DNA of 64,000 nucleotides. Origin: Chrysemys picta bellii (lineage: Eukaryota). The notes beneath the pieces were generated by a model. The model did no database searches, was not told where the DNA came from, and saw nothing but the letters and a program-made list of their open reading frames with translations. Of this stretch, positions 6,915 to 63,100 are shown piece after piece. Position 1 is the first letter of the stretch. Every line of letters starts with the position of its first letter. Location of the stretch: positions 34,038,001 to 34,102,000 of the forward strand of contig NC_088797.1 in NCBI RefSeq assembly GCF_011386835.1. The letters run 5' to 3'. The translations under genes were made by a program, and so were the position numbers.

Positions 6915-7660
6915 GAGTGTGTGTGTGAGAGAGAGAGAATGGGGGGAGCTGTTGTGTGTCTGTGTGTGTGTGTGAGTTTGTTGTGGGTCACTGTATGCGG
7001 GAGGGTAGTTGTGTGTAGGAGTGGGATTGTTGTAGGTTAGTATATGTACGGGGTTGTATGTGTGTGAGAGTGGGGTTGTTATGGATCAGTGTATGCAGGG
7101 GAGTTGTGTGTGTATGATAATGGAGTTGTGGGTCAGTGTACAGGGGGGTTGTTGTGGGTCAGTGTATGTAGGGGGGTTGTGTGTGCATGACAGTGGGGTT
7201 ATTGCGGGTCAGTGTATGCAGGGGGGTTGTGGTGTGGGGGTGAGAGTGGGGTTGTGGGTCAGTGTGTGCAGGGGGGTTGTTGTGGGTCAGTATGCAAGGG
7301 GGTTGTGTGTGGGAGTGGGGTTTTGTGGATGGTCAGTGTTTGCAGGGAGGTTGTGTGTGTGTGAGAGTGGGGTTGTTGTGGGTGAGTGTATGCAGGGGGG
7401 TTGTTGTGTGTGGGAATGGAGTTGTGTGTCAGTGTTTGCAGGGAGGTTGTGTGTGGGAGTGGGGTTTTTGTGGGTGGTCAGTGTTTGCAGGGGGGTTGTT
7501 GTGGGTCAGTGTTTGCAGAGGGTTGTTGTGGGTGTATGAGTGGGATTGTTGTGGGTCACTGTATGCAGGGGGGTTGTTGCGTGTGTGTGAGTGGGGTTGT
7601 TGTGGGTCAGTGTTTGCAGGGGTTGTTGCAAGGGAGAGTTTGGGTGTGTGGTGTGTGTGC
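6915..7660. repeat. GT-rich degenerate minisatellite in ACTN3 intron 1
   Basis: Repeated GTTGTGGGTCAGTGT(A/T)TGCAGGGGGGTT-like units interspersed with (GT)n. Confidence 0.8.
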
Positions 7661-10384: not shown

Positions 10385-11104
10385 GGCACGGTGACCCCAT
10401 TCCCCTCACTGGGCACCATGACTCCCCTGGGCACCATGTCTCCCCCAGGCACGGTGACCCCGCTCCTCTCACTGGGCACCAGGACTTCCCCGGGCACGGT
10501 GACCCTGCTCCCCTCACTGGGCACCATGACTCCCCCGGGCACCATGTCTCCCCCGGGCACGGTGACCCCGCTCCTCTCACTGGGCACCATGTCTCCCCCG
10601 GGCACGGTGACCCCGCTTCTCTCACTGGGCACCATGTCTCCCCCGGGCACGGTGACTCCACTCCTCTCACTGGGCACCATGTCTCCCCCGGGCACCATGT
10701 CTCCCCCAGGCACGGTGACCCCGCTCCTCTCACTGGGCACCAGGACTTCCCCAGGCACGGTGACCCTGCTCCCCTCACTGGGCACCATGACTCCCCCGGG
10801 CACCATGTCTCCCCCGGGCACGGTGACCCCGCTCCTCTCACTGGGCACCATGTCTCCCCCGGGCACGGTGACCCCGCTCCTCTCACTGGGCACCATGACT
10901 CCCCCGGGCACCATGTCTCCCCCAGGCACGGTGACCCCGCTCCTCTCACTGGGCACCAGGACTTCCCCGGGCACGGTGACCCCGCTCCTCTCACTGGGCA
11001 CCATGTCTCCCCCGGGCGCGGTGACCCCGCTCCTCTCACTGGGCACCATGTCTCCCCCGGGCGCGGTGACCCCGCTCCTCTCACTGGGCACCATGACTCC
11101 CCCC
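10385..11104. repeat. 720-bp composite VNTR of 27-bp and 18-bp monomers
   Basis: 14 copies of GGCACGGTGACCCCGCTCCTCTCACTG and 19 copies of GGCACCATGTCTCCCCCG variants; 14x27 + 19x18 = 720. Confidence 0.95.
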
Positions 11105-23100: not shown

Positions 23101-24887
23101 CGGAAGTAGTCGAGGTCCAGGGCGATGAGTTTCAGCAGTGCCTCCAGCACGTACACACACAGGAAGACAGCGTCCATGGCAGAGAAGAACCACTCTGAGG
23201 GGGTGAGGGGGCTGGCGTGAGGTCACGTACCCACTAGGCAATTCTGCCCTCACCATCCACGCCCGGCCTAGAGAACAAACCCTGTGTGACAACGGGCACC
23301 CACACGCTGGACTCAGCCCCTTCCTGAATGCAGACAGCATGGCCTAGTGGGAACGGGAGCCAGAACTCCTGGGTTCCCTCTCTGGGTAGAGGGGTTCCTA
23401 GTGGTTAGAGCAGGGGTGCTGGGAGCCACAAGTCCTGGGTTCTATTCCCAGCTCTGCTACTGATCTCCTGTGTGACCTGGGGCAACGTGCTCCCACTTGG
23501 TGCCTCAGTTTCCCCATGTCTATTCAGACTCTGAGCTCCTCTCACCCAGGTTAGCAGGCACTACCATAATACCCAGCATAACCATGAGCTAGTCCCTGAG
23601 GTGAGATGGACACACCTGCTTGGAAGGGGAAATGGGGTGACCTCAACGGGGGGTGGCAGCATCTCTTAGGTTAGCAGGGGGCACTGGGAAGACCACTGTC
23701 TGGGTGAGAGGGAACTGGGCAGAGAGCAATAGGCCAACCCTATGACTGGGTGATAGGGTGTCCTAGGGTGAGTGTGGGGCAATGGAGCAACCCCAGGCTT
23801 GGTGGAAGACAGTGGATCTGGGGCAGGATGGAAGGGGTCAATCCCGATAGCTGAGATGGGGGAGCAATGGGGCTATCCCCATGTATGGTGGGGAGGGAAA
23901 TGGGATGATTCCCATGGCCAGACAAGGGCAGGAGGGGAGCAATCCCCATGGCTGGGATGGATGGGAGGGGTAATGGGATGATTCCCATGGCCAACCCAAG
24001 GCCAGGGGGTGATCCCCGTGGCTGGGACGGGGGGAGGGGTAATGGGATGATCCACATGGCCAGACCAGGGTGTGTGGGGGGGTGATCCCCATGGCTGGGA
24101 TGGCGGGGAGGAGAATGGGATGACTCCCATGGCCAGGCCAGGGCGGGGGCAGCCTTACCTCCACGGACCTGCACCGCGGCGAAGGTCTGCACCACCAGCA
24201 CTGCCGTGTGGATGAAAACCACAGTGAGGATGAAGAGTTCGAAGGCCAGCAGATGAGTGAGCTTGTGGATGATGGCCCGCAGGGTCAGCAGCCGGGGCAA
24301 GGTCCTCTCCCACGCCAGGCGCAGCAGGACCATGGTGCCCCTCCACTTCCGCCCCTGCCGGGGGTCCTGCTTCCCTGGGCACAGATGCCACAGATCAGCC
24401 ATGGTAGGGAAGGAACAGGACAAATGATAGTTATGGGAGGCGGGGCAGGGCGGGCTGTGGGTTGTATGGGGGGCTGTGTAGGGGGCAGGAGCAGCCTGTG
24501 GGGGACTTGGGGTGCAGTAAGGTTCCATGTTCCCTCTGGCTCTCCTCAGGCAGTGGTACTGGGGCTTGGGGGGGGGAGTATGGGGTGTTTGGGGGGGGTT
24601 GCAGGATGGGGAGAGCATTATAGCGGGAGGAGCCCCATCTTCCCTTTGGCTCTTATTGGGGAGAGGTGTTGGGCAGTGGGGGGTTGGAAGCTGGGGTGGG
24701 GGCGTATGCAGAGGGGTGGGGGGATGGGGTGTCCAGGGAGCAACCTATTACCTTTCAATATCTTCGTGGGGTGGGAGGAGGCCGAGGTGGCTTGCAAGGA
24801 GGCCTGGGAGACAGGGGGCATCTCCTCCTTGTATGGAGGCTTCTCCATCTGGATGCCGGACACAACAGGCACGGTCAGGTAGTCCAT
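18558..24887 (-). CDS. CATSPER1: Cation channel sperm-associated protein 1 (predicted 447 aa, 11 coding exons)
   Basis: Exons 24887-24752, 24374-24159, 23194-23081, 22837-22678, 22199-22108, 20873-20730, 20453-20390, 20119-20047, 19629-19569, 19198-19126, 18768-18558; phase-consistent (1344 nt). Six-TM channel with S4 FRVLRVFKGVRAVRVLR and pore TLDDW. LAFELFILTVV...QTFAAVQVRGEWFF and LLFTYLQLMASVEHLQQQFRSQAA match recalled CatSper1 segments. First and last exon limits are less certain. Confidence 0.88.
23870..24140. repeat. Minisatellite in CATSPER1 intron 2
   Basis: About four alternating units ATGGGATGA(T/C)TCCCATGGCC... and ATCCCC(A/G)TGGCTGGGA(T/C)GG. Confidence 0.7.
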
Positions 24888-25964
24888 GGTGTATGTGTGC
24901 CCCAGCTCCCCGTGACTGGGATCCTGCAACCCAATTCCCTCAGCGACCCCCAAATGCCCCTCCCTCCTGCTGTCGTGTCCCCAGCCAAGCCCACGTCCCA
25001 GACTGATTTCCTGGTGGCCCCAGAACCCTGGGGGCCTGGAGGTTCTAGATCAGAGCCCCCGCCTTTGTAATGCTGTCACTGTGGTGACTCCTAAACACCA
25101 CAGTGAGGGGAGGGGACAGGGCAGGGGCCTAGGAGGGGGGTTCTGTAGGACCAGGGTGGGGCTTAGCAGTATGGAGTGAGCCTGGGTTGGGCCCCAGGAA
25201 GGAGCTGGGGGGCAGAGCATGGTCAGGGGGGCAGGGCAAGGTGAGGCCTAAGGCTGTAGGGAGGAGTCGGGGATGGGGGAGTGTCTGGGGGGGGTGCAGA
25301 GTAGGAGGTGGAGGGGGCAGGGGCTCTGTGAAAGGGCGGAGGAGGCAGGGATAGGGCCTAGCTGTCTGGGGAGGACTCTGTGTCGGGCCCAGGGTGGGGT
25401 GAGGGGGCTGTGAGGCCCAGGATGGGGTGGGTGTCTGTGTGGAGGGGTAGGGCAGGGAGTCTGCAGAGTGGGGTGGGGGCCAGGAGGAGTGTAGAGCAGG
25501 AGGGGGAGCACTATTGCAGCTCCCTGACCTGCTGCAATAGCAGCCCCTAGTGCTTTCACTTCCTCTCCCCTGCTCTCCCTTCCCCCCACTGTGATGAAGG
25601 GTCCTATCCCCTCCCTCCTGAATCTGGACTGTACTGGGAGCTCTGGCCTATGCTGTTCACCCAGAGAACCTAACCTGGGTCCGAGCAGGACAGCTCCAGC
25701 CCATCCCCATTGCCCCACTGCCCCTGTGCCTGTGCAGGCCCATCGTTCCTGACAGATCCAGCTGAGGGTGTGGAGACAAGGAGCTGGTTCCGACGCCACT
25801 TGGGGAGGGGGTGACTCCGGTTTCACCCAGTGGATCTGAGATCAGAATCGGCCCCTACCCACTGCAGTCAATGGGTGACTCTCGACTGACCCCAGGAATC
25901 AAGGGGATCAGATAGGGACCCTACATTAATGCAATGAATGAAAGTCATTGGGGCTGAGTTAGAT

Positions 25965-26374
25965 CAGTGGCTCTCAACCTTTCCAGACGACTGTACCCCT
26001 TTCAGGAATCTGATTTGTCTTGCGTTCCCCCAAATTTCACCTCACTTAAAAACTGCTTGCTTATAAAAACAGACATAAAAATACAGAAGTGTCACAGCAC
26101 ACTGTTACTGAGAAATTGCTGACTTTCACAGTTTTACCACATTATAAAATAAATCCATTGGAATATAAATATTGTACTTACCTTTCAGTGTATAGTATAT
26201 AGTGCAGTATAAACAAGTCATTGTCTGCATGAAATTTGAGTTTGCACTGACTTCGCTAGTGCTTTGTAGGTAGGTTGTTGCAAAACTAGGCAAAGATCTA
26301 GACTAATTGATGTACCCCCTGGAAGACCTCAGCGTACCCCCAGGAGTATGTATACCCCTGGTTGAGAACCACTG
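25965..26374. mobile_element. hAT (Charlie-like) MITE, 410 bp
   Basis: TIRs CAGTGGCTCTCAACC / GGTTGAGAACCACTG and an exact 8-bp TSD AGTTAGAT at 25957-25964 and 26375-26382. Confidence 0.9.
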
Positions 26375-26927
26375 AGTTAGATGACAACTGATTGGTGACC
26401 CACCATGTCCAGCACCCCCATCTCACCCTGTGAGCCCCCTTCACCAGGAACCAAACTTGGGATAATTCATTACCATGCGGGTGTTGCTTTGATCGGGGAA
26501 CACCATAGAAATGCAGTTATTAATACTAGCAGAGATGCAAATAGGAACCAGGAGTCCTGGTTCCCCCTGCCCCATCTAATCCACTAGACCCCTCTCCCCT
26601 CCCACAGCTGAAGACAGAACCCAGGAGTCCTGGCTCCCCACCCCCATGCACTAACCCACCAGGCTGCAGACCGCTCACATCATTATCAGCAGACAGCTCC
26701 GTCCCTCGGGGAGCAGAGAGTTAACACTGCATTTCCTGCAGCTCAGAGAAGCCGTGGGGCAGGCGGTGCAGGGAGACAGTGTGGGGACTGTGGGGGGGAA
26801 CGAGAAGGGACCCCTTTCTCTCCTGCCTCCTGCCCTGCCCCATCCCCACGTGAGACCCTCAGGAGGTGTCCCCTGAGGTTGCGGATCCAGCACAAGACCC
26901 AGCTTTCCCGGGCACCCGGTGCTGTCC

Positions 26928-29900
26928 ATGGCTCTGGAGTGCCAGCCCCTGGGCACAGTATCTGTGCGCCTGCAGATTGGGCTGTCCCGAGAGTCATACA
27001 TGCTTCCCCCAGAGGAGCTGGGTTACGGGCACCTGCGGCACCTGGCAGTGGAGCTGGTGGAGAGGAAGGTAATGGGGCTAAGCTGGAGGGGTGTTGAGAA
27101 GGGGAGCGCAGGTGAAAAGGCCAGGATCCAGGGTGTGGGGATGGGAAGGGGCCCCCAGAAGGAATCACAGAGGTTGTGCCCAGATGCCCATGCTGGGTCA
27201 CGGAGACACCAGGGGAGTTTGCTCAATATCTGATTAGTGCTTGGAATTTAGGGGAGCAGCTGTGGAACCCAGCAATGTCCTGACTTCCAGCCCCAGCTGC
27301 TCTAACCGTGAGTCCCCACTCCCCTCCCAGAACCGGGGACAGAATCTGAGAGTCCTGGCTCCCACCAGCCATGTTCTAACTACTAGGCTTCACTCCCCTG
27401 CCTCAGCTAGGAATAGAATCCAAGAGTCCTACCTTCCAGCACCTCCCCTGTTCTAACCACTAGACTTCACACCCCTTCCTGAGCTAGGAATAGACCCCAG
27501 GCATCCTGCCCTCCCTCCCTTTAACCACTATTCCTCCTCCCCTCTTGATGCCTGGAGATTGATTTGCTGTTCTCCTGAGACAGATTAAATGAGGCACAGC
27601 CTGGGGGAAACACAGGGCTGGACACTGCAGTGTCCCACAGATAGGGTAGCAGATGGGAGGTGCTGGGCTGCCAGGCGGCAGGTGGCTCGCTCCCTGGGGA
27701 ACCTCATGGCACTCAGAGCCCTTGGACAGCACCCTTGAGGGAGAAGGGGGGGCGCATGGTGTGGGGCAGGGGTCTGATCTTACCAGGGGACCTGCAGACA
27801 GGATTCGAGGTCGGGGAAAAGATGATGTGACCCAAGTGTAGGATGACTGGGGGGATATAGAGCCCTGGTCCAGGGCCAAAGCGGGAACATCCTTAATATT
27901 GGGGGAGGGTCTGAGCCTGAGCCTGCCCCCCTGCTGCGGACCTGCGCTCTCTCATTCACAGGAGGGTGGCTATTCAAAGGTTCCCTGTCTCCCCCGCATT
28001 TCCTTTGCCCCCTGCCCCCTCCCCGCCAGTTTCCATCTCAGGACAGCACAGGGAGCACTTGGGTGGGTGGGGGTGCTGCAGCAGCCATGCTGAGTCAATC
28101 TTTCCACTGCGGCTGGGGTCAGCGGGGCCCTGTCCCTCCTACCTGCGCTCTGAGGGCCTGCCCCCTCCCCGGCTGCCCAGTCGCCCTGCACCGAGCAAGT
28201 GAGAGAGGAAACCGCCCTAACCAGCAGAGCAGCTTGTTTCCGCTCCGTGCTCACTTGTGGCATTGCAGGGGGGGCTCGACTGGCTGCAGGGAGCGGGGAG
28301 TCTCATACAACTAGCCCTGTACAAACAGTCCCCGCGCTGAACCCCAGAGGCGGCTGCATGTCAGCGCCAGGCAAGGGATCCCTGTATAAACACCCCATGC
28401 AGCCCAGCCCAGAAGCAGCTGCCTCTCAGCACCAGGCACAGAAGCCTTGTATACAAAACCACCATGCCCCACTCCAGAGGTGGCTGCATCTCAGTGCCAG
28501 GCGAGGGATCCCTGTATAAACAGCTCCTGCACCCCACCCCAGAAGGGGCTGCATCTTGGTGCTGGGTAAAGGACCCCTATATAAACAATCTCCATGCCGC
28601 ACCCCAGAAGCAGCTGCATTTTAGCTCAGTGCAGTTACAATGAGAACACACAGCATTTCTGTATCAATGCGAGCATTCGAGAAGTGATACAGGAATCCAG
28701 GAGGCTGGTGTTAGTGGTGGGACTCTATCTGTGCTCCCCTCTCTCTCCCAGTGCATCTCAAGCCCTGGCAGGCTGGGGGCTCTGTGGAAGTTGTGCGGGT
28801 GGGGGATTGCTCAGCCAGGGAATGGTGCTGGGAAGAGCTGGAGCCCGCAGCCTGGGAGCAACAAAACCTGGAGCTAGAGAGAAGACTTCATGGCTATAAT
28901 AACCAGTCCTGTTCCGGTCCCATCTTCCCCCGGGGGAGGCGCTAATGTGAGATCACAGGCCAACCTTTACCAGCTAAGAGCAGGCCAGGCTCTCATGGGG
29001 GGGCGAGGTTACTGTCTGGCTCCCCCATAATTCCCCAGAAAGAAACCACGACTCCTGAGTTCTATGCCTGGCTCAGGGAGAGGAGTGGGATCTAATGGTT
29101 AGTGCAGGCCTGGGCGGGCCAGGAGTAGGGTTACCATACGTCTGGATTTTCCCGGACATGTCCGGCTTTTTGGGCCTCAAATCCCCGTCTGGGAGGAAAT
29201 CCCAAAAAGCCGGACATGTCCGGGAAAATAAGGAGGGAGGGCCCGGTGGTGCTCGGCCGGGGGCCGGGGCTGGCGGTGCGGGGCCGGGGGCCGGTGCTGC
29301 GAGGCCGGAGCCGGCGGTGTGGAGCCGGCGGTGCTCAGGCGGGGCCGGCGGTGGGAGACCGGGAGCCAGGCTGGGGGCCAGCGGTGCTCGGCAGGGGGCT
29401 GGGGGGTGCTCGGCTGGGGGCTGGCGCCCCAGGGCCCAAGCCGAGCCGCGTGGGAGACGCCGGGGCCAGAGCCTCTTGGCCTGGGCTGGCCGGCCGGCCG
29501 GCAACCACAGGGAACTACTCAGCCGGACTGGGCCGCCCCAGCCCCAACTTATCTGCTGCCTCCCTGTTTCAGGCTTCCTGCAAACATTTGATTAGAGGGA
29601 AGCAGGGGAGGGGGAGGAGCAGGGGGCGGAGCGTTCATGGGAGGGGGCAGAGTTGAGGTGGGGACTTTGGGGAAGGGGCGGAGTTGGGGCGGGGCCGGAT
29701 CCCCGTGGAGTGTCCTCTTTCCTTAAAATTAAAATATGGTAACCCTAGCCAGGAGGCCTGGGTTCTAATGCCATCTCTCTCCTAGTTCCCTGAATACGGC
29801 TTCCTGGGGGTGTCGGAGAAGATCATGCTGTTCCGGCATGACGACGCATCAGAGAATGTACTGGAGCACCTGGGGCCAGACAGTGTCATGCGCGCTGGGG

Positions 29901-32900
29901 ACCTGATTGAGATCGTGCTGTCGGGTGAGACAGTCCTGGGGCACCAGAGCCTGTGGATACCGAATAGGGCCTGGAGGGGAAAGGCCTCAGCTTCCTCTCC
30001 CTGCCCCATCTGAGCCACCCAGTTTCCCACCCTGGGGCAGATCAGAACTGGCGCCCCCTAGAGGACAAAGGCCCCTTGTCCCATTCCCCCATCCCACCCA
30101 GCCAGACCCCATGCCGTAGGGGCAGATCAGAGCCAGTTCCCCACAGAAGAGCAGGCCTTGGACTCCCATTCCCCCTACCAAACCCACCCCTTCCTCACTC
30201 TTCTCTCTCCCCCCAGCCTCAGTTTCCTTGGATTTCACTATCCGGCCCCATGTGCTGCTTGTTCACTCCTACAAGGCCCCAGCCTTCTGCGACTACTGCG
30301 GGGAGATGCTCTGGGGGCTGGTGCGCCAAGGGTTAAAGTGTCAAGGTATGGAGCAATCTGTGTCCACCCCTTCCCTCCCACCCCTGGGACTGACCCAGTC
30401 TCCTGGGTCCCTCCGCCTGACCCTAATCCTCTCCCCCTTCGTGGGTCCTTCTGGTGCCCATAACCCCTCTCTGCACCTGGCCTGATCCCCTGGGTCCCAC
30501 TGGGCAGATGATGCTCCCTCCAGATCTCCTGGGTCCTTTTGGCACACCTCTCCCCAGGCCTGGCTGAACTCCTCAGCCCTTTGCGCACCAGTAGTCCCCT
30601 CCTTCCAGGCCTGCCCAATCTCCTGGAGCCCCTCTGGGGCTCCCAGACCCATGGCCAGGGGGCCCATCTCCCCCCCAGGCCTGGCAGGGAGCCCAGTCCT
30701 CACTCTTCCCTCCCCCCAGGCTGCGGGCTGAACTATCACAAGCGCTGTGCCTTCAAGATCCCCAACAACTGCCGTGGTGTGAGGAGGAATCAGCTGGCCA
30801 GTCGCTCACTGGGTGCTACCACCAGCCCCAGAACCCCTGGCCTTGGCCAGAACGTGGGGGGCAGCCTGGAGGAGGTAGGAGCCGGGACTAACATAGCCAG
30901 GGGAAGGATTCCAGAGGGGAATGGCTCTTGGGTGTTGGGAAGGTCAAGGACTTCAGATGCAATGGATACACTCTGCAAAGGAATATGACGTCTGCTCTAG
31001 CAACTACACCCCACTCCTCTCCCAGAGCTGGATAGAACCCAGGAATCCTGGCTGCTAACCTCCTGCAGTGATGGCTGGATGGGATGGGGAAGGCCAGGCA
31101 GAGACTCAGGATAAATCAGAATTGGGGGTGGTTGGCAACTTGGCTGGAAAGTGGGGTGCAGTGAGGGACAGGGACAGTGCGGAGTTGGGGGGAGGGTGGG
31201 AACACTCACCACACTCTAACATGGACTCTGGTTCCCCTGCAGATCAGTCACTGGAAATGGGGCCAGCAGACGCAGGGCCCTGCACTGATTGGCCGCCCGC
31301 TCTGGAAGGACTGGATGGATCTGAACAGGGTCAAGGTGCCACACACCTTCCAGGTCCACTCGTACACCCGGCCCACTGTGTGCCAGCACTGCAAGCGCCT
31401 GCTCAAGGGGCTCTTCCGCCAGGGGCTGCAGTGCAAAGGTATCACCAGCTGGGACCACACAGAGGATTGGGGTACAGGGCTGACCCCGGGCTGGGACCCT
31501 GCCAGGATTGGGGTGAGGGGCCTGACCTTAGACTGGGACGCTGCTGGGATTGACTTTGGGGTCACTGTGGCCCCACTGGGCTGTAGGGGTACAGAACTTG
31601 GCAACCCAGCTTCAAGCTCTGCCCACATAGCTTCCCCATTCAGCACTGGAAGCTCCTTCTGATGGCATGTCCCAGCAACCACCCCAGCGAGGTGCCTCCT
31701 TTGAGTGCTGTCTGCTGGCCCAGGGAGGCTGCGTTCACAACCACTTATCAAGAGAACCCTGTACAGAGAGCTGGGAGTCACGGTCTCCGTGGCCTCTCCC
31801 CACCCTTCTGGGGCTGACAGGGAACCAGCAGAAACAGTCAAACATGCCAGGGGAACCCACATCATGGGTTCAAAGGGAGAAGTGGGGAGGATTCAGGGGA
31901 CAGAGATAAAAGGGAGGAGCTTCCCTTGATGTAACCAATGAAGCAACACTGCCTGAGTCTGCAAAGAGCCTGAGCCAATTGCTCTGAGGGGGGAACTACC
32001 CCCCTTTTGTCGCAGTGGGAGGTAGCACCCAGCCACACTGCTCCAGGGACCCCAGCAGGAAAAGGAAAGCTGGATCCCGGCTGGCCCGCTGCCCCACGCT
32101 GCCGCCTCTCTTCTCTCCCTGCCCAGACTGTAAATTCAACTGCCACAAGCGCTGCGAGCAGTTCGTGCCGGATGAGTGTGTGGGGGAGGGCCTGGCCCCT
32201 GGCACAGCAGGTAAGGACGGGGCCACAGGGACGGGGGGGGGGGACGACATACCCAGCACTACCCCATTCACGGCCCCAGCTCTGCCCCCTGCTTAGCTTG
32301 CTCACTGGGGAAGCCTGACCCCTCCCGGAGTGCCCCGCACTGCTATCCCACAATGCATTGGGCACAGCCCAGTGACCCTGTCTGGTCAGCATTAAGGCTC
32401 CACTGCTCTAAGCTTGGCTGGGCCAGAAGCTCCACCCCTCGTTACCCTCCCTGTGCTAGGGATAGAACTCAGGAGTCCTGATTCCCCCCTAGGGCACAAA
32501 CAGCACTTTCCTAAGGAGAGGGTCCAGAGCACTCCCTGCCCTGTCTTGCCCCCAGCTTAGTCTCTCCCCCCACTCTCTTCTGTCCCCAGCCCCACACCCT
32601 CCGCACCCCACCCAGCCTGCACTCACCCCCTGCCAGTCCCCCAAATCAGCCCTTATTTTATTACACTGCCTCTGCACCCAGCCTCATGATCGCCCCCACA
32701 CCCCGCTCTGCTCCCAGCCCTGAGCTCTCACCCAGAGAGGTGTCAGGCTGAAGAGCACTGTCCCCCCCCCAGAGCCCAGGCAGTTCTGGGAGCCCCAGGC
32801 CCCATCCTCTTTCTGCGTCTCCTCTTCTGCAGGCAGCACAAAAAGCTCAGACTCAATCTTCCCACCCTCCTGGGGGCTGGGAGTGCCCAGTGCCCATGGG

Positions 32901-35900
32901 TGCCAGGACTGCAGAGGTAGGGAGGGCCTAGGAGGGGTACAGGGTCCCCACACGCTCAGATTTGGCCTGGTCACCCCTCTGGCAGGACAGCCAGGCTCAA
33001 TTTCCAATTCTAGTCAGGGGACAAGGGGGGGCCTGAGCCCTTCTTTGTCATACCCCTGCTTCCAGCCCGTCTGCTCTAACCATTAGCCACCACTCTGCTC
33101 CCAGAGCCAGGCATAAAACCCAGGAATCCTGGTGCCCAGTGGCCCCGCTCTAGTCCCTATTCCCCCTTGTGTTTTCCCTGCTGGCCTCACAGAAAGCAGG
33201 GTATCACACTCTCCCCCTTCACCTACACAGATGGCGAGAGCCCAGAGTGCCCGTCTAGCAAGCCAGAGCCAGTGGAAGGGGAGGCGGATGGGGAGGGCAC
33301 CAGTGGGCACGGGCTGGCAGAGGACACAGAGGAGACAGAGCCCAACCCTGGGACTCTAGAGGCAGAGCTGCACACCAGCCTCAGGTAGGGACCCCCCAAG
33401 GATGGGTATGCGGGGTGTGGGGGAGGCTGCATGGTTCCCCTGGGCCTGCTGCTCCATAGTACAGAATGGGAAGGGTATCACCTATGGGGTCAGCGAACTC
33501 AGGAATCCTGGTTCCCAATCCCTGCTCTAACCACCAGACCTCACTCCCCTCCCAGAGATGGGCATAGAACCCAGGAGTCCTGACCCCAGGGAGCCTGGTG
33601 GGTGGTGGAAGGCTGTACCTTTGGGGGCTGAGGAGTCGAGTATCTGAGTCCCCGTCTCTCCTGGCGCCAGCCCCTGTTTCAGCAGCTACATCCCCTTGAT
33701 GCGGGTGGTGCAGTCCTGCCGGCACACCAAGAGGCGGCGCAGCGCCGTCCTGCTGGAGGGATGGATGGTGCACTTCACTAGCAGGGACCCCATGGTGAGT
33801 GCCCTGGCTGTGGAGAGAGGGTGGTGTTACAGGAGGGTCGGGGTGGAGCCTCAGGCAGGCTGGAATGGGGGATGGAGTCACAGGAGAATGGGAGGCAGGG
33901 ATCATGGATGGGCAGAGGGTGGGGCCACAGATGGATCAGGAGATGGAGCCACAGGTAGGCAGGGTGGGGTGGAGTAACAGGATGGGGCACGGGGTGGGAG
34001 GGTGTCAGGGAGTGGGGCTTGTGGCTGGCCAGGACTGGTTATGTGGGGACTGAGAGGAGGAGAGGGGGATTATTGGCCAGTCTCATTTCAGGGCAATGTT
34101 GGGTCGGGGGGGGCAGCAGAGGTTTGGGCCAGAGGGCCTTGGGATGGGCACATGCCCCCAGAATAATATCTCTGTGCCCCCCAGAGGAAACGCCATTACT
34201 GGGTGCTAGACAGCAAGAGCCTGAGCTTCTTCCACTGTGAGAGCGGAGGCAAGTTCTACAAGGTGAGGGGTCCCATTCCCTACAACACCCTGCTTCCCCA
34301 GAGCCCCAGTCCAAAGCAGCCTGCACTCCCCCCGCAGGACCCCCCTTCCTGATTCCTCACGCCAGAGGAGCCCAGCCACTGTCCAATGGTCTTACTCTTC
34401 CTGCAGGAGCTGCCGCTGTCTGAGATCCTCCAGATCCGCCCCTGGAAGGAGCTGACACCCCTGGCATCCAGCGGGAGCCCCCCCTGCTTTGAGCTGGTGA
34501 CGGAAGCCCTAGTGTACTACGTGGGCGAGCACAGCAGTGAGCGGGAGCCAGGGCAGGTCTGGGCAAGGGCGGAGGCTGGAAAGGCCTGGGCCAGGGCCAT
34601 CCGCCAGGCCCTATGGCCCGTGAACCCTGAGCCTGACGGCTCTGTCCAGGAGCCCAGTGAGTACCATAGGGAACCCTCTACAGGCAGCCATGAGCCCCAC
34701 CCCAGAGCTAGCTGCATCTCAGAGCTGGGTGAGAGATCATCCCTAATTCAACAGCCCCCATGCTGCACTGCAGAGCCAGCCAGACCTCAGTGTTGAGCAA
34801 GGAATCCCTGTGTTAACAACCCCTGGGCCACACCCCAGTGCCAGCTGCATCTAAGTGCTGGGCAAGAAATCCCTGTATCAACAGCCCCTGTGCCATATCC
34901 CAGAGACAGTTGCATCTCAGTACCAGGTCAAGGATCCCTGTATAAACATCCCAAGTGGCCATCTGAGAGGTGGCTGGCTCCTGCTCCCAGGAGAACAGGG
35001 TAGTGGGTCTGGATGTCCCAGTCAGGCCAGGTTCTTCTCATGTCTCCATTGTCTTGTCTCTGCAGATTCTGACTATGAGTCCCCAGATGACACGGTGAGT
35101 TGGAGAGGGTGGCACTGGGGAACCCTAGGAGTTGTGGGGTGCTTGGTCTGGCACAGGGAAGGGGATGAGCAAACATGGGGGCTGGTGTTGGGGTGAGGAA
35201 GCCAGGCATAGGGGATGGTGGCAGGGGTGGCAGGAGCATTAGGCCTGGCTTGTCAGGGTACCATGCTTCAATCCCCCCAACCCTGTCCTTGTCCTTCACC
35301 CCAGGACATCAGCCGTTCCTATCAGATCTTCCCTGACGAGGTGCTGGGCGCTGGGCAGTTCGGGGTGGTGTACGGCGGTAGGTGCCCTCCCCCGCCCCAG
35401 CTCCCATCCTGGCTCCCCCCTCCTGTGTTCCCCAATAATTCCCCTCCCTCTGTGCTGATCCCCCTACCTCCCCAATAATTCCCCTCCCTCTGTGCTGATC
35501 CCTCTACCTCCTCCTTGGGCACAGTCTGGGATCTCAGCTTGCATGTGCGCCCCTCAGGGGCAAACGTGGTCACTACAGCTCCCCAAGTGCCATAGCCATG
35601 CCCATCCCATCACTGCCATGCTTCCAGGAGCATGGTTTGCCCACTGCTCACCCATGGTGTGCTAGTGCACATCTCCCACCAGCCCTGCCCCACACCCCTC
35701 CTGTCCCAGCTCTGCCTCCCCCTCTGCCCCCCAGCCCTGATACCCCTGCCCTGATACCCCACCCCAGGAAAGCACAGGAAATCTGGCCGGGACGTGGCCG
35801 TGAAAGTCATCGACAAGCTGCGCTTCCCTCCCCGGCAGGAAAATCAGTTCCGCAATGAGGTCTCCATCCTGCAGGTGAGCCACTGGGGGTGAAAAACACA

Positions 35901-38646
35901 AAGACCCTGGTGGGAAGGGAGGGGATGTGTGGAAAAGGGGACCCTTGGGTGTACAGAACATGGGGACCCCCTCTGGGAGGGGCCACCACTGATAGGCCCA
36001 GAGATCTCCTCCCTGGACATGTTTGGCTGCCTCTGCCCATCAGCCCCAGTGGGGGAAAGGGGACAATAGCTGGACAGGCAGCACTCCCTCCCCCAATGCA
36101 CTGGGGGCTTTGTTGGGGCCCTGTCCCCTGGAGGGAGCTCCAAGGCAGTCCAGCACCAGCTAGCGGAGAAGGGCCTGCAGGGTTAGAGGCAGGTCTGAGT
36201 GGTGGGGAGGGTTCTTGGGCTGTGTGTGTGTGTCCTGGGGACAGGGGAGGGCTCCAAGGCTAGGGAGGATCCCAGTTCAGGCAGTTCCATCTTCTCCCTG
36301 CCAGAGCCTGCACTCCCCCTGCGTGGTGCACCTGGAGTGCATGTTCGAAGGCCCCGCCCGGCTCTTTGTGGTGATGGAGCGCCTGCGTGGCGACATGCTG
36401 GAAATGATCCTGTCCAGCGAGACTGGGCGGCTGCCCGAACCCCTTGCCAAGTTCCTCACTGCCCAGGTGGGTGCCCCAGCTTGCTCTCCCCGCCCCAACC
36501 CCCTGGAGTGGCATCATTGCAGAGCGAGGAGGACCAAGGAAACTGTCCTGCCTGGGGCTCCCCACAGGTGTCCCCTGCGGGCATGTTAATGATGCTGCAC
36601 CATCCATGATCACAGCTTGCATACTACTCAGAGTCCTTGTGAAAATATACACACCCACATACACTGCTCCCCCACAGCATGCCACTCCCGTCCCCCCACA
36701 TGCTGCTCTCCGTGCCATGCCAGTCACTCTCATGCACTGCTCCCCATCGCTGCTTATCCCCAGCGTGCCCACCACTGTGGTCCTGTCACCATTGCATACC
36801 ACACCCAGGCTCACCACTCAGCATGGTGGTATACTTGTGCACGTCAGCACTGCACATCATTGCACACTCCTCACCATCACTGTGCACATACACACACAAT
36901 CCCCTCTCTGCTCCCCAATGCCTGGGTCACGGTTCACAAAGCACTCATCAGCGCATGTGAGCGTGCAACAGCCCCCATGCCACATCCAGTCTGTGCATGA
37001 GCCCATCAGATACTCCCCCACACACACGGCAGGTAACCACCCCCTCCAGTAACGCTCCTCTGTGCTTGCAGATCCTGTCTGCCCTGCGCCACCTGCACAC
37101 CCGGAACATTGTGCACTGTGACCTCAAGCCAGAGAATGTGCTGCTGGCCTCGGATGAGCCTTACCCCCAGGTGGGACAATCCCTGCACCGCCTCCCAGCC
37201 CACCTCCCTGAAGCCCTGTTCCACCCCCTCAACCCTCTAGCCCCCTCTCCCTGAACACCCATCCTAGCTCTTGCATCCAACTCTCCCTTCCCCTTTCAGC
37301 CAAGACTGTATTACCAATCTTGGGCCAGACCAGAGCTGGCGTCGCCTAAAGGGGACAGGCCCCTACCCCGAGCCAGCCGGTCTCCTCAGAGTCAGGCCCT
37401 CCCAGCAGGGAAATGCCCCATATTCCCCACCCTCATGGTAACCCCTCACCTCTCAGGTGAAGCTCTGTGACTTTGGCTTTGCCCGCATCATTGAGGAGTC
37501 ATCGTTCCGGCGCTCAGTGGTGGGGACCCCAGCGTACCTGGCCCCCGAAGTGCTGCGGCAACATGGCTACAACCGCGCCCTGGACATGTGGGCTGTGGGC
37601 GTCATCATCTATGTCAGCCTGAGCGGGACCTTCCCCTTCAACGAGGAGGAGGACGTCAACGATCAGATCCAGAACGCGGCCTTCATGTATCCCCGGCAGA
37701 CCTGGGCCAGCATCTCCCTCGAGGGTGAGACCGCCTTGCATCCCCTCACACTGCCCCCTCACTTCCAGACTGGTCCTTTTGTATCCCCGGCAGACCTGGG
37801 CCAGCATCTCCCTCGAGGGCAAGACCCCCCCACTCCCCTGCGGCATGCCACTAGCAGCACACTGCCCCTGCACCTCCAGAACATGGCCTGTATGTACCTG
37901 TAGCATCCCTAGGGCACCACCAGAAAATTTGGGTGTTGCAGGCCCTGGCAGCCAATGGCTGTGCTCCCTGGGGGGAGGAGTTGGGGAGAGGTCTTGGCCT
38001 ATGTAACCCCCTCCTTCCCTCCCAGCTGTCAGCCTCATCCACCAGCTGCTGCAGGTGAAGCTGAGGAAGCGACTGAGTGTGAACAAGGCGCTGAACCACC
38101 CCTGGCTGCAGGTACCTTCCCTCCACCCCTCAATCCCTATCCACCCAACCCACATCCCTGCCTGCAGATACCTTCTGTCCCACAATCCACACCCCATAAC
38201 ACACCTCTTCCATCCCCTTGCACTGTCTAGCTCCACGTAACCTCCCTCCACCCTAGAACTCAACACCCTGCTCTCCCCTGCCCAGTTCACCCCAGTCTCC
38301 AGTCCCCGCTCCCAACAGTAAATGGCTAACTCAACCCCCTCCCTAGCTCTCCCCATCCCCTGAAGATTCCTTCCTCAGCACACGGTGCATCCCTGATAGG
38401 AGGAGCCTGGACTCCCCCCAGCACCTGTTGATGAGCTATCTCCATCCCCCCCAGGATTTCCAGACCTGGCTGGCCCTGCGGGAGCTGGAGACCCGTGTGG
38501 GGCAGCGCTACCTCACCCATCCAAGTGACGACGCCCGCTGGCAGCGCCTCGCCCGTGAGCAGGGGCTGGCCTGGCCATCAGGGCTCACCGTTCAGCCCAG
38601 CCTGGAGGAGGAAGGGGACAGCGACAATGCAGGCGAGGGGAGCTGA
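26928..38646 (+). CDS. Serine/threonine protein kinase D family member (821 aa, 18 exons), probably the PRKD4 ohnolog
   Basis: Exons 26928-27068, 29786-29924, 30217-30345, 30720-30874, 31243-31438, 32127-32210, 33231-33384, 33671-33794, 34185-34262, 34407-34656, 35066-35094, 35305-35377, 35768-35874, 36305-36466, 37072-37170, 37457-37724, 38026-38111, 38455-38646; 2466 nt open. Ubiquitin-like N-domain (LQIGLSRE), C1a, C1b, acidic linker, PH domain and kinase ([37 protein letters not shown]). Family is certain; the paralog is inferred from synteny, so no symbol is given. Confidence 0.92.
29126..29747. mobile_element. GC-rich hAT MITE, 622 bp
   Basis: Perfect 13-bp TIRs TAGGGTTACCATA / TATGGTAACCCTA, an exact 8-bp TSD GCCAGGAG at 29118-29125 and 29748-29755, and subterminal CCGGACATGTCCGG palindromes. 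Confidence 0.92.
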
Positions 38647-39046
38647 GCCCTCCAGCCCAGGACTCACTACTCATGGGAAATAGGGGGTGTGGGGACCCCT
38701 CAGCACCACATTGCCCCCATAAACTGATTTCTCCAAACTTGGTGCCATGTGGTCTGTGCAGGGTGCGTGCCCGTCTTGCTGGAGCCCATTCGCATGTGGG
38801 GGGTGTCACAGGCTCAGATTCCCCTGCACAAATGCTGCCCTAGTTCAGACCCCTCCAACATGAAATCCCCCACTCTGAACCCCAGGCCCACCATGGTGCG
38901 TGCCTCCCCTTCCCCATTGATCCCATCCACCTTAGTATCCCTAGTCCATTGCTCCTTGATCAACTGCCCTGCATATGAACAACACCTCCCAACCCCAGCT
39001 ACACGTGACTAGCAGAGAGTTCACAGCAGCTGCTCACAGTTTCACA

Positions 39047-60129: not shown

Positions 60130-63100
60130 CACGCCTACCCCAGGCCTCACCCATCCTTCCTTTTTGTTGGAATTATTTATGCAGGATATTGTCATGACAC
60201 TGATTTAACCATAAATTCCTTTATTGAATCCAAAGGCCAAATGGTATTTATACAATTGCTCTAAACATGCCTACAAAGCCTAAATAATAAGCAATTTACC
60301 ACATCCAGACAATAACAAAACATTTATAAGCATTTGATCATGATACTTACAAATGAGCTAAACCCCAGGGGTACTTAGACCCACATTGGTTGGCTCCAAC
60401 GTGGCCAGGCAGTTATTAGCAATTAATTCATTGAGTTAACTTTTTTCTACCCTTTAACAAATAAGTGATGTCTGTGCCAGGTATTGACTTCAGCTAAAAA
60501 AACAATTGGAGACAGGTCACCCTTATTCCCAGTCTTAATCCAGATAAGATTACAAGCTTCTTTCTACTCTAGGTCTTTCCTCTCTATCTGTCCCCTCCTT
60601 CCTGCTGTCCAACAGTTTTTCCTTTGGACCGGGGTTCACATGGGCCCTAATTTTTGCAATAACACTGGTGTGTGGGGTGGGAAGGGCCATGTTGGCTCAC
60701 TGTAAAACAGATTTTCTTTGTCTGATTTAAAACCATCTGCAGTTACCCGTATTAGTCCGAGGCCTTCTCTTCAGAAATGTCTCCTTATTTCATTAGTTAT
60801 TCTTTGAACCAGAGATGCTCCCTACTTCATGCCTTCTGGCCCTATAACTAATTACTTTCAAGGCCATTCTTTACCACACATATTTCTTCAGCCAAACGTA
60901 AGCTAACTTGAATTCTCTATTTTTTTTATTTATTCTACATTCCCCACTTCGAAACCCTACATACTATGTGGGTTTTACTCCATTAAGCATTTCAAAATAC
61001 TTCTACAATTTTATACAACTGCCAAGCTTTGCAATATAGAATTAACAGAATAATCACCATAATAACACTAGTAATTACCAAAATATTAAATGACCACCAT
61101 TACTATACGGATGTAGTCCCACATTATAAGCTTGCTCTGCCATTACCAGCATAGTTGCTTCACCAACTTCCCAACAGCATCTCAGCTGTACTGTGCAATT
61201 TGGAGACTGCTCCCCCAGAGTGAATTTACATGCTGGCAACTGTCAGTAAGACATGACACCTGCCCATGTAAGTGTCCTCCAGATGCAAACAGCAGTCCAG
61301 GTCTGGGGCTTTCCAGACCTTGTAATTGCCATGCAACACCATATGTGTTGTAGAGCTTTCCAGTACTTCCACTGGTAACTCTGGCCAAGGCTTTTTTCCC
61401 CCACAAACTTCATGGTATTGGACTCTTGTTCCTTTCTTACCCTGCACCAATGAGGATTACCTCCCTTGTACCTAACATTTAGTTTTCTGTGGTCATAAAA
61501 GAGGGCAACCTTCTTTGTTCTGTCATTTAAGGATGCTTTTACTTTATATAGCATGTATTTACAATGTACTATGCATGTTATTGCTTTTGCTTTTTACCTT
61601 TCATGATAGCAATTTAATTTTACCTTGTGCATTTCCAAAAAAAAAAAAATACGTCATGCTTATAAAACAATTCAATGCTTTTTATCAATAAATTCTTTGC
61701 TTTGTTCATTTTTAAGATACAATAAAATGTTAGCTAGATGCTAACTCTTGTTGAAAACACTCCCTCATTTAATCATAGAACTGGAAGGGACCTTGAGAGG
61801 TCATCTAGTCCGGTCCCCTGCACTCGTGGCAGGACTAATTATCTAGACCATTCCTGACAGGTGTCTGTCTAACCTGCTCTTAAAAATCTCCAATGATGGA
61901 GATTCCACAACCTCCTTAGGCAATTTATTCCAGTGTTTAACCACCCTAACAGTTAGGAAGTTTGTCCTAATGTCAAACCTAAACCTCACATGCTGCAATT
62001 TAAACCCAATGCTTCTTGCCCTATCTTCAGAGATTAAGAAAAACACATTTTCTTCCTCCTTGTAACCACCTTGTATGTACTTGAAAACTGTTATCATGTC
62101 CCCTCTCAGTCTTCTCTTTTCCAGACTAAACAAACCCCATTTTTTCAATCTTCCCTCATAGGTCCTGTTTTCTAGATCTTTAATCATTTTTGTTGCTCTT
62201 CTCTGTACTTTCACCAATTTGTCCACATTCTTCCTGAAATGTGGTGCCCAGAACTGGACACAATACTTCAGTTGAGGCCTAATCAGCACAGAGTAGAGCA
62301 GAAGAATAACTTCTCGTGCCTTGCTTACAACACTCCTGCTAATACATCCCAGAATGCTCTTTGCTTTTTTTTTTTTTTTTTTTGCAACAGCGTTACACTG
62401 TTGACTCATATTTAGCTTGTGGTCCACTATGACCCTCAGATCCCTTTCCGCAGTACTCCTTCCTAGGCAGTCATTTCCCATTTTGTATGTGTGCAACTGA
62501 TTGTTCCTTCCTAAATGGATGCAATCCTTCTGCGGCTAGCTTCTGTTAAAATGCTTGGAGTATGTCAGCTTGGTTTCAATGTGACATACCAGTCCCAAAT
62601 AGTTTAGCTTCTATGCCAATTTTTGGCAGGTTTAAGCATTTTAAAGTTTAAATCTTTGTCCATAAAGTCCTTTTGATGGTATTTAACCATTTTTGACCAA
62701 ATTACAGAGACTGCAAATGAGTGAAATTCAATAAAGTTGGTGCATGAATAAGCTAACCATTATTATACAGTATCTCCTTAATGGATTTAACCCTAAACCA
62801 TTATTTGGATTTGTTTTAATTTTAAGGGATTTTAATCTTGTATTCAATTAGCTTTAGTAGAAATATTCTTTTTCCATTTATAAAACACTGCCATGTAGGT
62901 TTTCACTCCCTTAATAATATTTACTTTACACCACAGTTAAACAAAACTTTTGGACAGATTTTTAATGGTTAAGCTCCGTTTCTTATATTCACTGATCTTC
63001 CTTGGTTCTGGGTTGGCTTCTGTTTCCAAAGTACACAGGCATCTGAAAAAGAAAACACAACCTATTCTGGCTCCTCTTTGGAGCTTTTATAGGATTTTAT

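Follow-up and report, generated by a model that had tools for sequence, protein, structure and literature searches.

The 64,000 nucleotides analysed here, hereafter the window, derive from the painted turtle Chrysemys picta bellii (contig NC_088797.1, positions 34,038,001 to 34,102,000 of the forward strand). Towards the middle of the window, at 26928-38646 on the + strand, lies a gene whose 18 exons encode a protein of 821 amino acids. We identify it, with high confidence, as the painted turtle's ortholog of PRKD4, the fourth of the protein kinase D (PKD) genes of vertebrates, situated between CATSPER1 and TMEM223/NXF1 in a block of the 11q12-13 type.

The gene was rebuilt from the raw sequence. 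A chain of open segments with PKD-type peptides was first seen in a three-frame translation of the + strand between 26.8 and 38.8 kb, and Pfam searches with single open segments recovered the PKD ubiquitin-like domain (ULD), C1 and Pkinase families. Splice junctions were chosen by scoring all in-phase GT/GC-AG pairs against PKD homologs, with variable linkers settled by reading the DNA. The resulting model opens with an ATG at 26928 and closes with a TGA ending at 38646, a span of 11,719 bp; each of its 17 introns is bounded by GT-AG, with pyrimidine-rich acceptors. Its 821-residue product is 100% identical, over the full length, to the RefSeq entry 'serine/threonine-protein kinase D3-like' of Chrysemys picta bellii (P0401), the locus of which (GCA_011386835.2, CM062324.1:34054928-34086646) is identical base for base to the window. 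The exons are as follows.

26928..27068, + strand: exon 1, start codon and first half of the ULD (Pfam PF25525); donor AAG followed by gtaatg
29786..29924, + strand: exon 2, second half of the ULD; acceptor ending in ctcctag, donor gtgaga
30217..30345, + strand: exon 3, first half of the first C1 domain (C1a); an acceptor giving a start at 30223 is also possible, and 30217 reproduces P0401
30720..30874, + strand: exon 4, second half of C1a and linker, with GGSLEE at its end (a motif common to bony-vertebrate PRKD4)
31243..31438, + strand: exon 5, linker and first half of the second C1 domain (C1b)
32127..32210, + strand: exon 6, second half of C1b
33231..33384, + strand: exon 7, acidic linker
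33671..33794, + strand: exon 8, start of the PH domain (IPLMRVVQS...)
34185..34262, + strand: exon 9, PH domain
34407..34656, + strand: exon 10, PH domain with its C-terminal helix
35066..35094, + strand: exon 11, a 29-nt micro-exon in the pre-kinase linker, kept as an exon in Lepidochelys and Emydura
35305..35377, + strand: exon 12, start of the kinase domain, with the Gly-rich loop GAGQFG
35768..35874, + strand: exon 13, VAVK lysine and alpha-C glutamate
36305..36466, + strand: exon 14, kinase N-lobe and hinge
37072..37170, + strand: exon 15, catalytic loop HCDLKPEN
37457..37724, + strand: exon 16, DFG, activation loop SFRRS and APE; present whole in small, transcriptome-sized sequencing runs
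38026..38111, + strand: exon 17, end of the kinase domain
38455..38646, + strand: exon 18, C-terminal tail and stop, without the ERVSIL-type end of PRKD1/2

Several local features of the gene may be recorded alongside this model. Exon 8 offers two in-frame acceptor AGs 12 nt apart, 33671 and 33683, which yield products of 821 and 817 residues (with and without PCFS); the former gives the RefSeq product, and the pair may reflect alternative splicing. A 94-bp tandem duplication (37686-37735 and 37780-37829) has carried a copy of the final 39 nt of exon 16, together with the donor site, into intron 16, where the donor GT of the second copy reads GC (GAGGGTGAGA to GAGGGCAAGA). This GC-donor copy is also found in Lepidochelys (locus L005, near 22170) and not in Emydura (L004), which places the origin of the duplication after the pleurodire-cryptodire split. 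Intron 1 holds a 65-bp tandem array. Many copies of a short interspersed repeat that includes ...CCCAGGAATCCTGG... (TQESW/NPG in translation) lie in the introns and flanks of the gene, both at 28341-28619 and scattered elsewhere (e.g. 26405-26587, 33080-33130 and 33530-33580).

The domain content of the product is that of a PKD. Its ULD (PF25525, Ubiquitin_PRKD1_N) occupies residues 11-94 and scores 89 bits against a cut-off of 27; starting as it does at residue 11, it leaves the N-terminus of tetrapod PRKD4 very short. Two C1_1 domains (PF00130) are well over threshold, and both retain the full H-x12-C-x2-C-xn-C-x2-C-x4-H-x2-C-x7-C ligand pattern (residues 105-154 and 222-271). The Pkinase match covers residues 505-757 (233 bits) and all kinase motifs are kept, namely GAGQFG at 508, VAVK at 527, HCDLKPEN at 622, DFG at 645, SFRRS at 656-660 and APE at 669. 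In turtles, the Gly-rich loop reads GAG instead of GSG. Between C1b and the kinase domain, a PH domain is predicted: an AlphaFold2 model of residues 338-472, built from a 45-row alignment, folds into seven strands followed by a C-terminal helix (predicted local distance difference test score 79), and its best Foldseek matches among solved PDB structures are two human PH domains, those of PKD2 (2COA) and PKD3 (2D9Z), with E = 1e-10. A sequence search of the PDB returned no PKD kinase-domain entry among its top matches, which were led by CHK2, PKC-beta and CaMK kinases. An earlier note, made from the letters of this DNA, had given the same start, end, number of exons (18) and length (821 residues), all of which are borne out by the rebuilt gene and its identity to RefSeq; the zinc ligands of the C1 domains, the PH domain, the catalytic motifs and the two activation-loop serines that it listed were likewise recovered by Pfam, motif matching and AlphaFold2/Foldseek.

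Homologs were gathered through a succession of searches. When exon 16 was searched exhaustively, the many kinases retrieved included a partial protein from tuatara (P0004) and a 'D3-like' protein of a ray (P0076). Searching from the latter listed elasmobranch 'D3-like' proteins first and PRKD3 next, while the tuatara protein retrieved a Pelodiscus protein (P0276), many teleost entries named 'protein kinase D4', including that of Danio rerio, and partial PRKD1/2/3. The Pelodiscus protein, in turn, gave 29 turtle entries from about 17 species, mostly of 760-880 residues and commonly of 821; salamander and frog proteins of approximately 820 residues and a 'D3-like' lungfish protein followed, and PRKD3, PRKD1 and PRKD2 came thereafter. 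A combined query of the ray PKD and the translated window exons was dropped: MAFFT scattered the fragments, and the window protein invariably ranked below more than 100 PRKD3 sequences.

Taken together, an intact, constrained fourth PKD is kept in turtles, tuatara, amphibians, lungfish, sharks, rays and teleosts. Among the best 8000 candidates by shared words, no crocodilian, bird, squamate or mammalian protein fell within the score range of the turtle and amphibian orthologs. An absence of PRKD4 from mammalian and bird proteins is therefore suggestive and not proof, given that scoring covered only those 8000 candidates and that the GC-rich 11q-type block is often missing from bird assemblies. 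Teleost genes are already called 'protein kinase D4' by NCBI and UniProt, and the tetrapod entries are mislabelled; the label 'PKD1-like' that had been anticipated for the turtle gene is found only in some other species, as 'D1-like', RefSeq having settled on 'D3-like' for Chrysemys.

The placement of the gene was examined in a maximum-likelihood tree of 61 rows and 819 columns (IQ-TREE, LG+C20+F+G4), rooted on hemichordate and arthropod sequences. The window protein falls in a fourth clade (support 100/99) together with teleost 'protein kinase D4', the elasmobranch 'D3-like' proteins, lungfish, amphibians, tuatara and turtles, with Lepidochelys as its neighbour in the tree. This clade is sister to PRKD3 (98/94; PRKD3 itself 100/100), while PRKD1 (100/98) and PRKD2 (100/100) form the other pair (100/98); squamate rows were placed in PRKD2 and bird rows in PRKD3. 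Within the fourth clade, elasmobranchs branch first, followed by teleost prkd4, lungfish and then amphibians with a group of tuatara and turtles, which is the order of the species tree and implies that the clade predates the gnathostome radiation. Pristis pectinata and Protopterus annectens each possess one PRKD3 and one protein of the fourth clade, and the two clades are accordingly paralogous. The arrangement is also matched by a character that played no part in defining the groups: an ERVSIL-type C-terminal tail is found in PRKD1, PRKD2 and the hemichordate outgroup, and PRKD3 and PRKD4 are without it.

The genes surrounding PRKD4 in the window, as assigned by Pfam and best PDB matches, are listed below.

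Near 8.6 kb, - strand: exon 1 of an alpha-actinin gene (best PDB matches ACTN2 and ACTN3)
About 11.4-13.5 kb, + strand: a DHHC palmitoyltransferase gene (Pfam)
About 18.1-24.9 kb, - strand: CATSPER1, with a called Ion_trans product of 447 aa (closest PDB entry 'Cation channel sperm-associated protein 1')
Next after PRKD4, - strand: a TMEM70/TMEM223-family gene, 223 aa (Pfam)
Beyond TMEM223, - strand: NXF1 (Pfam)

On the human map, 11q13.2 carries ACTN3 and ZDHHC24, 11q13.1 carries CATSPER1, and 11q12.3 carries TMEM223 and NXF1. PRKD4 thus lies in the paralogon member that matches human chromosome 11 (11q12-13), and the 11q12-13-type neighbours claimed in the earlier note are confirmed. The order Ion_trans (-), PRKD4 (+), TMEM223 (-), NXF1 (-) is common to Chrysemys, Lepidochelys kempii and the pleurodire Emydura macquarii. 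More distant loci were less telling: within 10 kb, the neighbours of frog PRKD4 are an acylphosphatase gene (Xenopus) and a cystatin gene (Spea), which are uninformative on the 11q13 block, and no neighbours were shown at the Heterodontus locus.

CATSPER1 (-) and PRKD4 (+) stand head to head, with approximately 2 kb between their called coding ranges (24887-26928), and may accordingly share a bidirectional promoter. In the ray Hemitrygon, an Ion_trans gene is found upstream of PRKD4 on the opposite strand, and the arrangement may for this reason date from the gnathostome ancestor. In Xenopus tropicalis, the acylphosphatase gene is located just downstream of PRKD4 (L002, 53584-57699). The human genes ACYP1 (14q24) and ACYP2 (2p16) reside on chromosomes which also carry PRKD1 and PRKD3, and the Xenopus gene could hence be a further paralog lost in mammals.

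The flanks of the window contain repeats of several kinds. A GC-rich minisatellite at 10385-11103, just upstream of the DHHC (ZDHHC24-like) gene, comprises units of 45, 63, 108 and 153 bp, with about 15 copies of the 45-mer, and can be read without stops in several frames, as a repeat rich in Pro, Gly and Thr. Near the first exon of the alpha-actinin gene, a G/T-rich tandem array (6961-7629) is built on a unit of about 49 bp, with higher-order periods that range from 124 to 297 bp. The C-terminal part of a CR1-type long interspersed element reverse transcriptase, open over 230 aa, occupies 61846-62535 on the - strand, in an AT-rich stretch (GC 0.36-0.39, versus approximately 0.6 in the rest of the window).

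Three competing accounts of the gene merit consideration. The first leaves its identity as an ancient fourth paralog intact and disputes only the term ohnolog, since PRKD3 and PRKD4 might have separated through an early segmental duplication of their own and not through the second whole-genome duplication. The window neighbours are chromosome 11 members of families with further copies on 14q, 19q and 2p, which speaks for the whole-genome event, as do the symmetric (1,2),(3,4) topology and the location of the four genes on four members of a published paralogon (human chromosomes 14, 19 and 2, together with chromosome 11/gar LG28). Although the tree is without cyclostome sequences and synteny was seen over some 60 kb of the window, not at chromosome scale, we regard a separate segmental duplication as very unlikely.

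The second sees in the gene a duplicate of PRKD3 (in keeping with the RefSeq name) or of PRKD2, either lineage-specific or relocated, and no separate ancient paralog. PRKD3 (PKC-nu) is indeed the closest clade, which accounts for the automatic name: turtle PRKD4 is approximately 60% identical to gar PRKD3, both proteins are without the C-terminal tail, and the closest solved PH domain by identity is that of PKD3 (2D9Z, 48%). However, PRKD3 resides at another locus (2p22 in human) and has a long N-terminal stretch, about 60-90 residues rich in Ser and Pro, that tetrapod PRKD4 does not have, and a late duplicate would be hard to reconcile with a clade whose elasmobranch, teleost, lungfish and amphibian members follow the species tree, or with the joint occurrence of both genes in Pristis and Protopterus. 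When the tetrapod and lungfish PRKD4 sequences were constrained to group with PRKD3, the tree was worse by 45.5 log-likelihood units and was rejected by the approximately unbiased (AU) test (p = 5e-5); the gene thus does not group inside PRKD3, as its database name would imply. The group to be constrained was chosen after a quick tree, and it matches the outcome named beforehand in the earlier note as refuting its proposal, a protein nested inside PRKD1, 2 or 3. What was found instead is a separate clade, in a phylogeny of the kind that note had proposed as a check, with PRKD1/2/3 and teleost prkd4, that of Danio included (gar and coelacanth PRKD4 are not in the tree). Squamate sequences whose identity had been uncertain group with PRKD2, apart from the turtle gene, and four PRKD loci have been reported in Pelodiscus (PMC6298421). 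A PRKD3 or PRKD2 duplicate is thus largely refuted and, in our estimation, highly improbable. The proposal that the gene is the missing fourth ohnolog, retained in an amniote, is supported by its separate clade, the AU test and its 11q12-13-type neighbours.

A third account, which concerns function, requires measures of constraint and expression. Coding sequences were located at three turtle loci, from two cryptodires and one pleurodire, by matching database proteins to DNA, and the ratio of non-synonymous to synonymous substitution rates (dN/dS) was estimated by the Nei-Gojobori method. The same 18 exons occur at homologous positions in all three, with the reading frame intact. The overall ratio is 0.126 between Chrysemys and Lepidochelys (dS 0.13) and 0.20 between Chrysemys and Emydura (dS 0.235), with the smallest values in C1b (0-0.06) and in the kinase domain (0.06-0.16); in C1b, Chrysemys differs from Emydura by no non-synonymous change and from Lepidochelys by one. 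PRKD4 is thus under purifying selection in turtles. Transcription is indicated indirectly. Small sequencing runs presumed to be RNA contained 0.15-0.22 of the sampled words of 29700-38700 (9 kb, of which exons make up a share of about 0.26), while the same or sister runs contained 0.91-1.00 of the words of exon 16, and whole-genome runs contained 0.96 of the 9-kb words; the small runs therefore hold exons and little intron. That the gene is a decaying relic, transcribed or annotated yet unconstrained and heading for the loss inferred in mammals and birds, is scarcely credible in view of these ratios, the shared intact exons in both turtle suborders, the retention of all catalytic and zinc-binding residues and the 29 turtle entries, mostly of 760-880 residues, in spite of the long reptile branches, the unusual residues beside the activation loop, the GAG of the Gly-rich loop and the lack of archosaur, squamate or mammalian matches in the PRKD4 score range among the candidates scored.

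Several considerations temper our assignment of the gene to PRKD4 and to an active PKD. Firstly, the branches of reptile PRKD4 are long (0.29 for the turtle and tuatara stem, 0.22 for the turtle stem), as are those of the teleosts; the PRKD1 and PRKD2 rows of the tree are few and mostly partial, and the tree was built without cyclostome, gar or coelacanth PRKD4. Secondly, the PH match in Pfam (residues 360-433) is sub-threshold in the turtle protein at 18.3 bits against a cut-off of 25.1, although it exceeds the cut-off in the frog and zebrafish orthologs. Thirdly, the transcriptional support consists of shares of sequence words in runs that are labelled RNA by guess. Finally, nearly all other PKDs read IIGEKS before the first activation-loop serine while reptile PRKD4 reads IIEESS or IIGESS, so that regulation may differ, and we infer diacylglycerol responsiveness and regulation only from homology to PKD1-3 and from the intact C1 domains.

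Comparison with known PKDs shows what the turtle gene shares and where it departs. It has the same clade (100/99), paralogon member and domain order as teleost prkd4 (zgc:175248) and the PRKD4 of gar LG28 and Pelodiscus. The GGSLEE(I/L) motif of the C1a-C1b linker, conserved in bony-vertebrate PRKD4, is common to the turtle protein and PRKD4 of other species, as is the phenylalanine of DFQTW (F760, in place of Y), the only PRKD4-diagnostic residue to emerge from a strict scan. The teleost entries retrieved are shorter isoforms of 640-700 residues on long branches, whereas the tetrapod proteins are full-length at about 820 residues with their very short N-terminus, and the activation-loop context of the turtle protein differs, with EESS against GEKS. 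Like PRKD1 and PRKD2, the gene encodes ULD, C1a, C1b, PH and kinase domains in that order, with an HCD catalytic loop and an SFRRS activation loop; these two make up the other pair of the family (100/98) and possess an autophosphorylation/PDZ-type tail (ERVSIL/ERVSVL) that PRKD4 does not.

By analogy with PKD1-3, PRKD4 would be a Ser/Thr kinase that responds to diacylglycerol. The pair of C1 domains would bind this lipid and recruit the protein to Golgi or plasma membranes, the ULD would drive dimerisation, and the PH domain would contribute to autoinhibition, with phosphorylation of Ser656 and Ser660 in SFRRS expected to switch the kinase on. A bolder proposal is that PRKD4 is a functionally distinct isoform, that its reptile form has rewired regulation, and that its pairing with CATSPER1 reflects a bidirectional promoter common to both genes and some role in the germline or in sperm. 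A distinct isoform with altered regulation is suggested by the substitutions preceding the first activation-loop serine, by how short the N-terminus is and by the lack of a C-terminal tail; we consider the proposal as a whole unlikely.

The existence of PRKD4 and its paralogon assignment are not new. In 'Evolution of the Muscarinic Acetylcholine Receptors in Vertebrates' (eNeuro), Pedersen et al. (2018) treated PRKD as one of 15 neighbouring families in the CHRM1/3/5 paralogon (PMC6298421). They named PRKD4 in the Chinese softshell turtle (Pelodiscus), gar and zebrafish (supplement, Fig. 3-3), listed four PRKD genes for the softshell turtle in a supplementary table, and placed gar PRKD4 on LG28, which shares a paralogon member with human chromosome 11. 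Since PRKD4 had thus been assigned in turtle, gar and zebrafish, the inference of a fourth ohnolog was already published; a 2026 preprint on the Prox family repeats the LG28/chromosome 11 point. Full-text literature searches found no paper on PRKD4 function, nor any using 'protein kinase D4', or 'PKD4' with 'protein kinase D'; 'prkd4' occurs in three papers, in one of them as an item in a gene list. The additions made here are incremental and consist of an exact painted-turtle gene model, a wider taxon list, microsynteny, dN/dS estimates and the loss of the C-terminal tail common to PRKD3 and PRKD4.

Mammals possess three PKD genes, and the literature on PKD signalling treats the family as comprising three. 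PRKD4 offers a clean case of differential ohnolog loss, as well as an example of how automatic names such as 'D3-like' and 'D1-like' can mislead. For work in zebrafish and Xenopus, a fourth PKD represents a possible redundancy which three-gene designs would overlook.

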